From Podarcis erhardii (lineage: Eukaryota), in the NCBI GenBank assembly GCA_964252035.1, contig OZ176209.1: a stretch of 64,000 bases of DNA; one strand, 5' to 3'. This document shows, in pieces, positions 2,807 through 57,639 of this stretch. Position 1 is the first letter of the stretch, and each line of letters opens with the position of its first letter. Under the pieces are notes generated by a model. It made no database searches. It was given only the letters and a program-made list of their open reading frames with translations, and was not told the DNA's origin. The position numbers and the translations under genes were made by a program.

Positions 2807-3344
2807 GGTACCTCTGTTTGAACTCATGCCTCCTTGGTCTGAATTTAGCTCTCCGGACATTGTTCATGAGCTTCCTCAGATTTCTTGAAGAGTCTAGCAA
2901 TGGAAGGTATTTAAAGCAGTATGCAGTAAAGGCAAATTTCCTTAAACACGAGTTATCATGGATAGTCGCCACTGGTAGCCTTATACTGAAGTAGGTCAAC
3001 CTGTAGACTGATCCAACACATTTTTACTTACGTTTTTTTAGGGATTACATTTTATGAGCATGAAAGACTTTACTTATTTTCATGGAGAATTCCTCCATAA
3101 AATATATTGCTATGTGAGAGAATCCTAAAGATATGAATCCCATGACTGATTTAAAAGAGTCTAAAAATATTAAAAGTCATGTTCTACTCAACTGATTCGG
3201 TACTAAATAGGTGTCTGCCCCACCTCCCACACGGGGAAAATTAACATTTTGGAAATAATACCAAAATAGGTAATGTGTACACTTTGGTCAATTTCTAAAA
3301 AATACACACGTACTGGAAAAACTTAAATGAAACTCAGAACGTAC

Positions 3345-3408
3345 CCTTTCGAGTAATGAAAGTGTAGCTTTTAACGCTCCTTCTGGACGCCCAAAAGGGA
3401 AACAATAC
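3345..3408 (-). CDS. CADPS2: CADPS2 internal coding exon (64 nt): (R)[21 protein letters not shown]
   Basis: Acceptor tatttaAG, donor GTACGT; phase 2 to 0. Invariant CAPS motif. Confidence 0.97.
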
Positions 3409-3439
3409 CTTAAATATAGACAAAAGATAGACCCTTTAT

Positions 3440-3526
3440 TAGAATCATAGAACTGTACAGTTGGAAGGGACCCCAAGAATCATGTAGTCTAGTCCAACCC
3501 CCTGAATTGCAGGAATCTCAGCTAAA
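3440..3526 (-). mobile_element. Short CR1-type 3' tail
   Basis: agaatcatagaactgta.agttggaagggacccc..tagtccaacccc motif, shared with 31580 and 33118. Confidence 0.65.
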
Positions 3527-4506
3527 GTTGCACCTTTGTGTGACAAGAACATTTGTATATATTTCTTTTAAAATTATTTAGAAAAGTATGTGCTCCTTTG
3601 GGGGCGTAGGTGGGTGGGCACGAGGGACAGAACCCTTAAGTTGTACAATTTCCTGTCCTGAGTGGTATAATTGACTCTCTCCTGCCAATCATTTAGGCAT
3701 GATCTCCAAACACTTTTATGCATGGATGCTTTTAATGTGGGTGTGCAAAGTTTAAGGCTCTTCATTTCTATTTGGATGGCTCCAAGATGGAACTGGGTCA
3801 GAAAATGTGTACTACCCCAATTCCTAGTATTGTTTGAGATTTCATAGGGGTTTAAATCAACAAGATTAACAGGTTAGAAGCGCAATCCCACACAGAATTA
3901 CTTAGAAATAAGCAGGCTACGTTTGGGACCTGCTTCCAGATAAATGAGTACAGGATTAATAAACTTCTACATCTTCAATTTCTAATAACAAAGGTATTAC
4001 ATTTTCTTGCCCAAATATTCTTAGATTATCTGCATGATTTTTGCCCTGTCCTTTGTGCTTTCTCTTGTTACCATATAAAAGATGTAATCGCTATGACATG
4101 CCTAGTATAAACAATTCGCTGTCCACCAAGGCCAAATAGCAATGACTGATAGGCAAAATCAGTGTTAAGTTATATTTTTTTAAAGGAGGGGTCATTTGTG
4201 CTATATATTTTTGGTCTGCACCATCCATGCTTGCAAGTCTCTGATCTGTTTGCATGACCGGCATAAATTGGTACAGAATGGGCAAAATTCATATGCGACT
4301 TGCAACGTTAGGTAGAGTAAATGTCTGATGCTTTAAAAAACCAACTGACAGGAAGGGTGATATTCCTCTTCAAAGGCCTTAGTTGGTTTATAAAAACTGA
4401 ACGGCATTCAAATTTAAGATTGCACCAGGATCTAAACCCTAATTCACCATCTCCTTCTTTCCTCATAGCAATAGGCATGTCAAACTTGCAGTATGCAAAT
4501 GTTTAC

Positions 4507-12375: not shown

Positions 12376-14089
12376 ATAGTAAAAATAATAAAGGTGAATG
12401 CCATCTCACAGGAATCAAATCAGTCAAATACTCTCAAAAGGTGATCCTCAAAGATCAAGTACTGGTTGGCTACCAGGACAAAGTAATCACTTAAGACAAA
12501 TTAGAAACAAGGCAGAAGGAAGTCCCAGAGATACAATTCTAGTTGAAGGCTAGGGATGACACATTTATCCACTCCGTTACCTGAATTTGGGCCTGTTCTC
12601 TTATCATCTCAAGCAGTTAGGCTTTATCTCTGATATTTATGCCTTGAACCTCTGCCTTGTTTTTTACCGCATATATTGTTTTCCACTTGGAACTTGTGGG
12701 GGCTGATTCTACACTTTTGGGCACCAGACTGGTCGTCTCTTTCTCATTCAATTCTCATACCCACTTGTCTATTTTTTTGACCCAATTCCCTTCATACATA
12801 ATATATGCTTGGTCTTTCATCTGGTTAGTTTAACTTAAAATATTCCCTGATTTTTTCATCTTGACCCCCTCCCACCACATTTTCGTCTCTGTCTGTAACA
12901 CTGCGATTACAAGCCTTAAGGTCAGGGCAATGTGATTTTTTCCAATTACTGCTGTATAGCATCTAGTAGCTTTAGACACTTGTAAAATAAAAGAGGATGA
13001 CAATCTGCCTATGCATGTGGAAGCTGTGGTTCAAAACAACTGCAGACAAATGCGGTACAACAATTGCTCCATTTCCTTGCACCACTCACGTTATTGCAAG
13101 GTACTCCATTTTAATTTTTAAAAGCTATCTGCCACTGCTAGCAAGAGCAATTTAGTTTGTCTTTTTTGAAGTGTGGCTGTAGAGTTAATGTATGACTACA
13201 ATGCAGCAGAAAAAATAAAACAGAGGGCAGGGAGAAGATACAGGGAGCTTCTTCATAGCATCTTATGCAAAAAGATTGTCCACCACACACTGGGAGAAAA
13301 ACTGGCATTAAAAACAAACATTAATTACCTGCTATATGAAGTGGAAACATGGCACTCCTATGCACTCGGCTTCTGAAAGGCAACATGCCTTATATGGTAT
13401 TCGCCAAGCTGGTAATAGGGATGCGATGGCCCTCTTAAGAACAGAACACACTGCTCATCTAGCACAGCCAAACCATTTCACCATTGGGCCTTTAAGACGC
13501 CTTTGTCTCCATGTTGATGTCTTTCTCCTCATCAAGCCTGACTTAGGAAAAGTATGATTGGTACTCACCTGAAGTGTAGATCTCTGATTGGCATCATGAG
13601 GTCACTAGATTGGGTTCTGGCTCCACCCTGGTCACAAGGCAGGAGAAAAAACTGGGAAAATGGGAGGCTCCCCCTCATTTTTGCAGCCAAACTCCAACAG
13701 TCATTGATGTCACAAATGGTAAAAGGCCACTTTCTCCTAATACAGTTACAGCCACCAGCTGCCCAAATAGCATGAGAACATGCAGTAATAAATGAGGCAT
13801 GTTGTAGTCCATGTTAGGGTGTGGGCTCCAGTGACCTCATGATGCCATCAAAGTTCTACAGTTCAGGTGAGTACCAACCGTACTATCTCCTACTGGCACA
13901 ATGGGGTCACTGGATTGGGATGTACCAGAGCTTACCCAGTTAGGGTGGACCCCAACTGTAGACTAGGTTACTGTGGCAGGGCTTGCGCCTAAAGGAAGCC
14001 TCAGCAGATGAATGCAAACCAATCATATAGTGCCTTGTAAAGGTGCTAGGGGATATCCCAGTGGCAACCCTACAAATATCTCCAATGGG

Positions 14090-53610: not shown

Positions 53611-53960
53611 AGGTAAAGGGGACCCCTGACCATTAGGTCCAGTCGTGACCGACTCTGGGGTTGCGGCGCTCATCTTGCTTTATTGGCCGAGGGAGCTGGC
53701 ATACAGTTTCCGGGTCATGTGGTCAGCATGACTAAGCCGCTTCTGGTGAACCAGAGCAGCACACAGAAACGCCGTTTACCTTCCCGCTGGAGTGGTACCT
53801 ATTTAACTACTTGCACTTTGACGTGCTTTCGAACTGCTAGGTTGGCAGGAGCAGGGACCGAACAACGGGCGCTCACCCCGTCGCGGAGATTCAAACCGCC
53901 TACCTTCTGATCAGCAAGTCCTAGGCTCTGTGGTTTAACCCACAGTGCCACCCGCGTCCC
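53611..53960 (-). mobile_element. Sauria SINE, full length
   Basis: TSD ctccttacat on both sides. Confidence 0.94.
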
Positions 53961-54989
53961 ACTACTCCTTACATATATACACCTAAAATGCATTAAGTGG
54001 GTTGGCACTGTAAGTTGATCAACCTGAAATCTGTGTGACTTGCCTCTGAACAGACACAGCTGAGGTCTGATCACTGAAGGATATAACCAAAAAAGTTCTG
54101 AACACCTAATATCATAGACTGCAACGTCTTGCATGTAGCACACTCTCCAAAATGAAAGCAGAAATACATTTTAAGGCAGGAAATAGTGTCTTTCTTCATT
54201 CTTTCAAAACAAAATAGAATGGGCACCCAACATGACATAGTTTGCATATAACTAAGCTTTGGAAACAAAAATTTGAGTTTGCCAATAGAAAATGAAACCG
54301 AAACGCTTTTCACATTGCCCATTTTACATTTTGAACTTCAAGTTCACCCGTAGGCTTAACAGTTTCTTAGCTTTCCTTTAAACCATGGTGCCCTCTTGTG
54401 GCAAATGCTGTTTAATACAGAGGACCGGAAGCTGCTTGTATTAGTTTTAGATAGCTCATATACTGCTCACCAGACTACAACGGATTAATAACATAGATTG
54501 TGCATGAACTGCATCCTGGTATCACAAATGCCAATATAATCAGAGTTGCCTTTTGAAAGCACTTTATCACTGCCTTTTATAAGCAAGTGTGTAGCTGAAC
54601 ACGTATTGTACTGTACACAGTACTACCTTAAGGGTGAAAAAAATAAGTCCCTGGACAGAAGGAACTGTCTTTCTGTGGTATGGACATTGTGCAAAATACA
54701 GCCTCATAACCCAAGGGAGATTGGTCTAGCTTCTTCTCTGTACAGCAATGCCTATATAGCAAGAGTCATTAAGTTCCATTGAGGCCATTAATGTACCTTG
54801 ATGGCTGCCTTCATGACGGAGAATTGCTCTAAGCAGGTCTAGTTAACCGAAGCTCCCTTCCTCACATGTCATCCTCAAGTGTGTGGCTCCCAGACCCTTC
54901 CCCAACTTCACATTGAACACCTGTGCACATTCCTGACAGCACAGGCTTCTCAGTCACATGGAAATCTGTGACCTTGTTAGCTTGCAGTG

Positions 54990-55045
54990 CCAAGCCAAGC
55001 CAAGCCAAGCCAAGCCAAGCCAAGCCAAGCCAAGCCAAGCCAAAC
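54990..55045. repeat. (GCCAA)n pentanucleotide array at the edge of an 'aagccaaaccatgg' repeat into which the hAT element inserted
   Basis: Seen directly; it explains the QAKPS/LAWLG ORFs. The host repeat resumes at 56084-56120. Confidence 0.85.
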
Positions 55046-55341
55046 CAAGCCAAGCCAAACCAAACCATGGCTTAGCAGGAATATGTGGGCTCCCAGATAA
55101 GAGAGCGTGGCTGTTCTGCTCTACTTCTGGGTCGTGTTACAGCTGTGCTGCTGAGTGATGGTTTGTCTCACTCCAGACAAACCACGAGCCACAAGGCTTG
55201 TTCTCGGTTTGCAGCCCATGGTTTGTCTGGAGAATCAAACTACGAGCTAAGCCAAACCATGGTGCAGAGCAACAGCAGGACCAGTGGAGGAGCAAAGTGG
55301 CCATGAATTCCTGTCTGGGAGAGTGCACACTTGTGCGAAGC

Positions 55342-56083
55342 CAGGGGTCAGCAAACGTTTTTATCAGGGGGCCAGCCCACTGCCCCTCAGACCTTGTGTG
55401 GGGTCAGACTATATTTCAAAACATAAAAATACCTGCAAGCCGGTCCTGCAGCTGCTTCCAGACCTGGAGGAGGAACGCACTCTGCACGTGCTCAGGAGCG
55501 TGTCTCGGTGCCACTCACTCACTGGCATTGTTGACGAGCAGCAGCTGTTCCATTAGCCCATCCCCATGGAGCTCCTGGGCGGCATGCACCACACGCTGCG
55601 GCCCATCGTCCAAGGCCAGGTTGGCGGGCAGGTGGCGCACAGATAGCCCTCCAGCTGCTCCAGGGTGGCCGCCGAGCGCACCACCAGCAGCACTGCCGAG
55701 CTGGGCACCAGGCACGCCAAACTCCAGCTGAAGCCCCACGACGCACCTGTCACGATGCCCATGGTGCGGTCCAGACCCACCGCCTGCCCCTCTGTCCATA
55801 GCCGCACCAGGTTTACCTCAGCACGTGGGTGATGCGGCTTTGGATTGACTGCAGGAACTTCCTGCAGCCAATCAGAAGTCGCGCCAGCGTCGCCACCTGC
55901 CCAGAGCCGTCCGCAGCTTTGGATTGGCTGCAGGAACTTCCTGCAGCCAATCCAAAGCCGTGCCAGTGTCGCGGAAGTTAGTCCCCGCGCAGGGACTGAC
56001 TGAGTGGGTGGCAGGGTCTGCAGGTCGGATTTATGAGCCGGGAGGCCCCATCCGGCCCCTGGGCCGTAGTTTGCCGAGCCCTG
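55342..56083. mobile_element. Non-autonomous hAT (Charlie-like) DNA transposon, 742 bp, carrying captured gene cargo
   Basis: TIRs CAGGGGTCAGCAAAC (55342-55356) and GTTTGCCGAGCCCTG (56069-56083), 13/15 matching. 8-bp TSD TGCGAAGC (55334-55341) / CGCTAAGC (56084-56091), 6/8. No transposase. Confidence 0.88.
55523..55799 (-). pseudogene. SPR: Degenerate copy of sepiapterin reductase exon 1 (SDR N-terminal Rossmann region) inside the hAT element
   Basis: Across two frameshifts it reads M...GLDRTMGIVTGASWGFSWSLACL-VPSSAVLLVVRSAATLEQLEG...LPANLALDDGPQRVVHAAQEL..EQLLLVNNA. This aligns with SPR (TGASRGFGR..LVLSAR...LRQLEAEL...VPADL...RLLLINNA). It ends at a GTGAGT donor (55522-55517) where SPR intron 1 begins. 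Confidence 0.88.
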
Positions 56084-57060
56084 CGCTAAGCCATAGTTTG
56101 GTGTAGTATCACGAGCTAACCAAGTCTTTTTGTGTAGGCTTCGTCTATGCCCACATCCACTGTCAATGTGGAGACGTGTGAATTTAAGGGACTGCTATAT
56201 TTTCATCACAAAATTTAATTAGCGTTAAAAATATGCACCACTAGCTTCAGGAATGGTGCAAAGGAACATAGAAATTCAAACTGCACTACTGTTCTGGATT
56301 ACGCCTTGACTTTTTCTGTGTCTGTTCATTCAGAAAGTTAAGAACATTCCGCCTTCAAATTCCCTGATCAGAAAGCAGAGAAGTTCTGCTGGTCCTGATA
56401 GAAATACGCACAACATAACATGTTACAATTTGATAAAATGACAGAATGGCCAAAGCCTCGGAAGTGTGCCGTCTTAAAACGAAATACGGCGTTTTATGTT
56501 ATTTCATGCCAATCAAAGTCGGAAGTCTGCCATGCTAATAAAAAAGCAATTGACCCCAGCAGCGAAGCTAATTAAATGAGATAAGATAATTAAATGCTTC
56601 TCAATATGTAATCAAAATGGAAGCTGTAAGTGTTTCACAATGAAGTATTTTTTTCTCTCTCCTCAGTGCTAGAAAGAACTGGAATGAGCCTAAACAGATG
56701 CACAAGAAATAGGCCAGACTCCAGAGAAACAAAACATGCTTTTGTGGGGGAAAACAGAGCTTTGTTTTATCTTGAGACAGAAGCCCCTCAAAGCTGACCA
56801 CAAGTTGTGTTGAACGCAGCCATAGGTTAAGAGATAACATGCACAACAAGAAACAGCACATATTTAGTACTAGACATGGGGAAACATCTTAATGTGACAA
56901 CAGTCAACACATGTAAATGAAGTTTCCCATCCACACCAAAGGGAAAGACATAAATGTGCATCTGTATCAAAGATGGGGAAACCTGTGGATTTATAGATGT
57001 TGCAAGGCTACAATTCCCATCATCCCTAGGGACCATGGATGCTGATAGCTGGGGCTGATG

Positions 57061-57144
57061 GGCCTGTAAAGCAAGATGAGCGCTGCAATCCCAGAGTCGT
57101 CTGCGACTGGACTTAACTGTCAGGGGTCCTTTACCTTTACCTTT
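57061..57144 (+). mobile_element. Sauria SINE 3' fragment
   Basis: gatgagcgctgcaatcccagagtcg..caggggtcctttacctttaccttt. Confidence 0.85.
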
Positions 57145-57383
57145 TTAAAAGACTATTACCTGCTCGACATCTTAATCCTTTATTACTTACCAAACAAGCC
57201 AGCATAGAAAAATAAAATAAATATGCAGTACTTTGCTATTCTAATGAGAATTATGCACCAGGTATCTTTATTGCCATGCCATGAGAGGTTATGAAGGCTG
57301 TATTACATGGGATATGCATAAAAAAAACTCAAATCACAAAATAAATAAAGGAATAAATAGAAAGGGATGTGGCTCAATTATTA

Positions 57384-57639
57384 CAGTGGTACCTCAGGTT
57401 ACATGCGCTTCAGGTTACATACACTTCAGGTTACATACGCTTAAGGTTACAGACTCCACTAAACCAGAAATATTACCTCGGGTTAAGAACTTTGCTTCAG
57501 GATGAGAACAGAAATCGCATGCTTGCGGCGCAGCGGCAGCAGGAGGCCCCATTAGGTAAAGTGGTACCTCAGGTTAAGAACAATTTCAGGTTAAGAACTG
57601 ACCTCTGGAACGAATTAAGTTCTTAACCCGAGGTACCTG
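57384..57639. mobile_element. Tc1/mariner MITE, opposite orientation to 39402-39649
   Basis: TA|CAGTGGTACCTCAGGTTA ... TAACCCGAGGTACCTG|TA. Confidence 0.88.

Follow-up and report, generated by a model that had tools for sequence, protein, structure and literature searches.

Positions 55342-56083 of the 64,000-nt window (the whole stretch of Podarcis erhardii DNA that was analysed) are occupied by a 742-bp non-autonomous element of hAT type, with a GC content of 0.55-0.69 compared with about 0.38 in its surroundings. Read along the minus strand, the element begins with a terminal region (56083-55973) and continues through palindromic repeats (55972-55834), an ATG at 55799, a stretch that reads as an SDR-like N-terminus in shifting frames, the motif LLLVNNA with a GT dinucleotide immediately behind it and about 87 nt of non-coding sequence to a second terminal region (55435-55342). 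The coding stretch derives from the gene for sepiapterin reductase (SPR), and the parts of the element, compared with the SPR locus of P. muralis (L002) and with copies of the element at four P. lilfordi loci (L001, L005, L006 and L007), are as follows.

55334..55341, no strand: left copy (TGCGAAGC) of the 8-bp target-site duplication (TSD), a 6/8 match with 56084-56091
55342..55435, minus strand: hAT terminal and subterminal region, the 3' end in SPR orientation, conserved in L001, L005, L006 and the cargo-less MITE at L005 43103-43422
55436..55522, minus strand: first 87 nt of SPR intron 1, opening with the GT donor (55522-55521) and matching P. muralis SPR collinearly at L002 4326-4411
55523..55799, minus strand: decayed SPR exon 1, with its ATG at 55799-55797 and its last exon base at 55523, aligning to L002 4001-4325
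55800..55805, minus strand: 6 nt of SPR sequence 5' of the ATG, with which the cargo begins on its 5' side; homology in L002 starts at 3995
55806..55972, minus strand: non-SPR interior, a short linker and then two 79-nt tandem units, from repeat finding
55973..56083, minus strand: hAT terminal and subterminal region, the 5' end in SPR orientation, which aligns to the corresponding ends of L001, L005, L006, L007 and the cargo-less MITE
56084..56091, no strand: right copy (CGCTAAGC) of the TSD, pairing with 55334-55341

Boundaries, termini and non-SPR interior

Short CAG...CTG termini together with an 8-bp target duplication are the signature of hAT transposons, and both are present here. The terminal inverted repeats (TIRs) start with CAGGG and match at 13/15 positions (55342-55356 on the plus strand against 56069-56083 on the minus strand), and these termini, which we take to resemble the hAT-Charlie type, are kept across the five copies of the family. 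The duplicated octamers are identical at 6/8 positions in the window, at 8/8 in L005, L006 and the cargo-less MITE, and at 7/8 in L001. The boundaries of the window element are validated by its paralogues, because their similarity to it stops at 55342 (L001 and L005) or 55344 (L006) on one side and at 56083 on the other, within 2 nt of the termini. The preliminary description had proposed an element of this length with these imperfect TIRs and TSD, produced by one insertion; the paralogues back its boundaries, and the same structure of termini plus cargo recurs on four other chromosomes, in three two-ended copies with an 8-bp TSD of their own.

These observations also bear on the possibility that no transposon was involved, and that a segmental duplication placed a 5' fragment of SPR between inverted repeats that occur there by chance. 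The terminal 15-mer alone is not significant in the window (4 matches with at most 3 mismatches, against 2.4 expected) and the TSD is a 6/8 match, both of which would suit such a duplication; however, the similarity to the four paralogues ends no more than 2 nt from the termini wherever an end is present, and three of them have TSDs of 7-8/8 at unrelated flanks, which refutes this reading and makes it very improbable. Insertion of a transposon at the window locus rests on the 6/8 TSD plus the evidence from the family.

The hAT element appears to be nested within a mid-copy repeat (55059-55341 and 56084-56212, at 3-10 times single-copy depth), which has 18-nt inverted arms at 55059-55076 and 56085-56102 and adjoins a (GCCAA)n microsatellite at 54979-55077. 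Extremely high-copy repeats are found on both sides of the locus (53800-54053, 56975-57228 and 57356-57600; summed contig depth 10^5 to 10^6), and many contigs connect 53960 straight to 57382, which suggests that the repeats at these two points are two halves of one abundant element.

Inside the element, the two 79-nt tandem units (55834-55893 and 55913-55972) are near-perfect palindromes with inverted CCAAT boxes. Summed contig depth is about 6500 times single copy in the bin containing these palindromes (55832-55958) and about 9000 times that of the single-copy flank in the terminal bin (55324-55450), and L007 has the palindrome unit too, at 13733-13785, where it is embedded in another kind of repeat. 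A captured SPR promoter was considered as the source of the CCAAT palindromes and rejected, given the thousands-fold depth, the unrelated repeat at L007 and the lack of any match in the 4 kb upstream of SPR. By the same three observations the palindromes are repeat-derived, and the CCAAT unit belongs to a lizard repeat of very high abundance. As a composite, the element has three components: the SPR cargo, the hAT termini and, at 55806-55972, a putative stretch of another repeat that is itself abundant.

The SPR cargo and its decay

Aligned with blastn and MAFFT, window positions 55805-55436 (minus strand) match the P. muralis SPR locus at L002 3995-4411 (E 4e-78), and the cargo takes in the 6 nt preceding the ATG, the complete exon 1 and, beyond it, the opening 87 nt of intron 1 with the GT donor. 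In P. muralis, SPR exon 1 covers L002 4001-4325 (325 bp) and encodes residues 1-108, ending in LLLVNNA plus one G; a phase-1 GT donor follows at L002 4326-4327, and exon 2 starts from 6099. The captured parent piece is about 417 bp long, and its first exon has a GC content of 80%, a composition paralleled by the reported bias of Pack-MULEs to the GC-rich 5' ends of genes. Alignment to a genuine lacertid SPR gene thus bears out three proposals made from the window alone, namely that 55523-55799 is SPR exon 1, that this exon ends at NNA/G, and that the roughly 90 bp after the donor belong to SPR intron 1. No other match to the window element was found in the rest of the P. muralis SPR gene or in the 4 kb upstream of it, and a search of the SPR loci L002, L008 and L009 for a relic of the lacertid SPR-bearing hAT family revealed none.

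Short protein matches of the SPR pieces are weak but specific, and it is the nucleotide collinearity that argues strongly for the identity of the cargo. The N-terminal piece had a single match in NCBIfam, the sepiapterin reductase family TIGR01500 (profile positions 2-51, E 0.051), and the sole PDB matches of the C-terminal piece were SPR chains (residues 61-104, E 0.046). Nothing was returned by phmmer for the N-terminal frame piece against the PDB, by a Pfam search with the N- and C-terminal pieces, or by a homologous-protein search with the 94-aa mixed-frame ORF, and a protein-atlas search of the fragment gave 'SDR fragment' only. A full-library HMMER search with the C-terminal piece led to short predicted proteins, plainly further copies of the SPR fragment, several of which continue beyond NNA into the same post-donor sequence, and a profile built from the fragment copies finds the genuine SPR proteins of Podarcis muralis, P. 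raffonei, P. lilfordi, Zootoca and Lacerta. Four longer proteins (P0001, P0005, P0008 and P0010; 432-1574 aa) match the 46-aa SPR piece with 35-46% identity in 3-7 stretches apart from one another, and are probably of repetitive or low-complexity composition.

Judged from its sequence, the cargo is a DNA-level copy of SPR, since its collinearity with the parent crosses the boundary between exon 1 and intron 1, and this excludes a retrocopy. A processed pseudogene of SPR would likewise appear as a decayed coding fragment distant from its parent gene, but the window copy retains the donor and the first 87 nt of intron 1 and has neither exons 2 and 3 nor a poly(A) tail, which refutes this origin and leaves it with almost no probability. 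Like other Pack-TIRs, the hAT element has an interior that originates, as a DNA-level copy, from a host gene at another place in the genome, and the SPR-bearing copies lie on contigs whose sizes differ from that of the SPR contig.

The window copy of exon 1 measures 277 nt and the parent exon 325 nt. Three deletions separate the two, one of 8 nt (near 55783), one of 15 nt (near 55717) and one of 25 nt (near 55641); the 15-nt deletion is in-frame, while the other two shift the frame and correspond to the 'two frameshifts' noticed in the preliminary description. There is also a 1-nt insertion at 55512, in the intron piece. Overall the cargo is 83% identical to its parent, with 63 substitutions over 369 aligned positions (55436-55805), of which 39 (62%) are changes of CpG to TpG or CpA; its GC content is 0.66 and its CpG o/e ratio 0.58, compared with 0.80 and 1.06 in the parent. 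A functional SPR paralogue would need an unbroken frame that includes the TGxxxGxG motif and the catalytic part. Residues 1-108 alone are represented, two deletions disrupt the frame and motif arginines are changed to W, and a copy with this sequence is unable to encode an SPR enzyme. A search for RNA runs found none that convincingly contains the window copy (at most 0.05 of words). The window copy probably has no function and is most likely a neutral relic; residual activity is plausible solely as a source of a start codon and a splice donor for chimeric transcripts.

Copies of the family and a second capture

Four further copies are located on four different P. lilfordi chromosomes:

L001, 2704-3444: SPR-bearing copy, TSD GTGTGGAC / ATGTGGAC (7/8)
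L005, 2266-2962: SPR-bearing copy, TSD GTCTGGGG (8/8)
L006, 2113-2926: SPR-bearing copy, TSD AGCTGGAG (8/8)
L007, 41526 to about 42200: SPR-bearing copy, 3' end truncated

Both cargo junctions are common to the window copy and all four of these, and L001, L005 and L006 have both termini. Identical junctions at differing sites, with differing duplications, indicate that the element was mobilised after the capture; the shared junctions and separate TSDs thus point to a single capture, after which the element transposed. Capture at the DNA level by a non-autonomous hAT, as first proposed from the window sequence, is upheld by these recurring junctions along with the collinearity with SPR. A cargo-less MITE with the same termini is present at L005 43103-43422 (320 bp, with a perfect TSD, GCATAAAC) and is likely to be a relative of the backbone element. 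The preliminary description had looked to the rest of the family both for SPR-bearing copies and for other host fragments: the former exist, and the five sequenced members all carry the same SPR cargo, different cargos being unseen among them. Within the window, a self-BLAST of 54800-56600 found no second copy.

A maximum-likelihood tree built from the cargo unites the five copies in a single clade (97/97), whose stem is short (0.053) and whose tips are star-like (0.12-0.14). This clade falls inside the lacertid SPR clade (100/100), where the tree does not fix its placement among the SPR genes of Podarcis, Zootoca and Lacerta. This topology fits a single capture and then a burst.

Copy number and age were assessed by aligning Logan contigs of four related species to the window. 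Single-copy flank depths in the four species were 22, 14, about 9-17 and 143, and the SPR core reached about 15-18 times the flank depth, although contig depth is not a copy number; a base other than that of the window was found at 55693 in 12-20 distinct contigs per species. Together these values suggest, roughly, 10-20 copies per genome in each of the four species. The insertion site of the window element is occupied in relatives B, C and D, where contigs bridge the unique flanks into the element, and flank differences are about 1-6%; the insertion is therefore older than the divergence of the four species. A search for an empty orthologous site in the three relatives examined yielded occupied sites only. 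Zootoca has gene models derived from copies of the element (P0012 and P0026), which dates the family to the split between Podarcis and Zootoca or earlier.

Besides these two Zootoca models, the captured exon is included in P0003 and P0009 of P. lilfordi and in P0004 and P0007 of P. muralis, all of them predictions. P0003 spans L005 2501-43677, P0009 spans L007 2501-42082, and P0026 is fused to an RPL27-like part; the labels given to the models in annotation are 'hypothetical', 'SPR-like' and 'RPL27-like', and the models are either annotation artefacts or real chimeric transcripts. They raise the question of co-option, in which the copies would act on SPR by antisense or small RNAs, or would serve as alternative first exons through the captured ATG and donor. 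What speaks for co-option is that models of P. lilfordi, P. muralis and Zootoca take in the captured exon or start inside it, that P0003 and P0009 reach over about 40 kb, that the P0003 product exits the cargo exactly after the end of exon 1, and that orange colour in Podarcis depends on SPR regulation (bioRxiv 10.1101/481895). However, all copies are heavily decayed, having lost CpG in the way that is typical of methylated DNA free of selection, the window copy is not clearly contained in any RNA run, and the gene models are 'hypothetical' or 'uncharacterized' predictions, such that co-option appears improbable in comparison with a neutral relic. The region upstream of SPR is the orange-morph locus in Podarcis (bioRxiv 10.1101/481895), and no link was found between this locus and the SPR-bearing copies.

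A second SPR-bearing hAT came to light through a 113-aa 'sepiapterin reductase-like' protein (P0018) of the amphisbaenian Rhineura floridana, which surfaced in the profile search. The corresponding element (L003 2900-3895, CM057606.1) is 996 bp long, is bounded by 15-nt TIRs (CAGTGGCGTACCAAG and CAGTGGCGTACCTAG) that match at 14/15 positions, and is flanked by an 8/8 TSD (TATAAAAC). Its termini (CAGTGGCGTACC...) are unlike those of the lacertid family. The interior (2987-3821, about 835 bp) is collinear with Rhineura's own SPR gene (L004), starting about 15 nt 5' of the ATG and passing by way of exon 1 and the donor well into intron 1, with identities of 85% and 77%, and in the cargo tree it is sister to Rhineura SPR (100/100). 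From the distinct termini and the derivation of each cargo from the lineage's own SPR, it follows that two unrelated hAT families took the same SPR module independently. The Rhineura element thus resembles the lacertid family in the gene that was captured, in the part taken (exon 1, donor and start of intron 1) and in its 8-bp TSD, and differs from it in having unrelated termini and a longer cargo of about 835 bp derived from Rhineura SPR.

Origin of the family and its significance

We conclude that the window element is very probably old and inactive, and is one copy in a multicopy family of Pack-type, non-autonomous hATs that carry a piece of SPR. A hAT MITE of an ancestral lacertine lizard gained a genomic SPR piece of about 417 bp, a promoter-proximal CpG-island exon together with the beginning of its intron, most likely via template switching during double-strand-break or replication repair. 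The chimeric element, which may have been mobilised in trans by a hAT transposase, spread in a burst to some 10-20 scattered positions, with a separate 8-bp target duplication at each. Among the loci examined, none showed an autonomous hAT with these termini. The window copy was inserted before the four sampled species split, and has subsequently suffered CpG deamination and deletions.

Another possible history makes the window locus the founder of the family, a cargo-less MITE that was filled in place by transposition-independent gap filling and from which all other copies descend. Gap filling is the main origin of animal Pack-TIRs (Tan et al. 2021, PMC8277862), and a star tree excludes no copy as the founder. 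Yet the prior for any single one among some 10-20 copies is low, the branch from the window copy to the parent is no shorter than the others (tips 0.12-0.14), and the multicopy Pack-TIRs of Tan et al. 2021 (PMC8277862) do not fit gap filling. We regard a founder at the window locus as unlikely, and the window element as one inserted copy among many.

Gene capture by hAT elements is already documented in animals. Tan et al. (2021, Nat Commun, PMC8277862) identified 370 Pack-TIRs in 100 animal genomes, 208 of which are hATs, and set out the gap-filling and FoSTeST models of capture; only 4/370 were multicopy (three in frog and one in alligator), and lizards are not mentioned in the text of their paper. 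The process is consequently less novel than the preliminary description had implied. In the open-access full-text literature we found no report of an SPR-carrying hAT or of a 'Pack-hAT' in lizards; what is new is the SPR-hAT family itself, which is unusually multicopy and well resolved among the Pack-type hATs already described in animals.

The closest counterpart is Pack-hAT-N8_XT of Xenopus tropicalis (PMC8277862), which is likewise a non-autonomous hAT with a 5' fragment of a host gene between its termini, present on several chromosomes with distinct TSDs and at a distance from the parent gene. Whereas Pack-hAT-N8_XT has 3 copies of a 291-bp 5'UTR, the SPR-hAT family has about 10-20 copies of a full coding first exon with its donor and the start of the intron, and it is also much older (tips about 0.13) and common to lacertid genera. 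Plant Pack-MULE, Pack-CACTA and Pack-TYPE elements (PMC5861414, PMC8903248) share with it transduplication at the DNA level followed by amplification, but belong to the Mutator or CACTA superfamilies, have long TIRs and TSDs of 9-10 bp or 3 bp, and number thousands per genome, often with several cargos. Captures by Helitrons in vespertilionid bats (PMC4224331) are similar in that vertebrate DNA transposons amplified promoters and 5' exons; these are rolling-circle elements, however, with no TIRs or TSD, in which capture occurs by read-through and not by template switching between termini.

In plants, new gene structures arise to a major extent from gene fragments that cut-and-paste transposons have captured, while in animals such captures have been thought to be mostly single, non-mobile copies. 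The lacertid family provides a multicopy example in amniotes whose first exon is complete and comes with its splice donor, whose parent and junctions are defined, and whose amplification is burst-like. For annotation and read mapping at SPR it also calls for caution, as some 10-20 dispersed look-alikes of SPR exon 1 give rise to gene models that are chimeric or spuriously 'SPR-like'. That an amphisbaenian hAT took the SPR module separately hints that capture is non-random. We tentatively raise the possibility, which we consider doubtful at present, that squamate hATs repeatedly and non-randomly capture CpG-island first exons, from a few bases before the ATG (possibly from the transcription start site) through the donor to the start of intron 1, as they did twice independently with SPR; capture would then be directed by the local state of DNA and transcription, in open, GC-rich, R-loop-prone promoter-proximal DNA, and not by chance. 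If this is true, such hATs would be a genuine vertebrate system that spreads first exons together with their donors and seeds chimeric genes.
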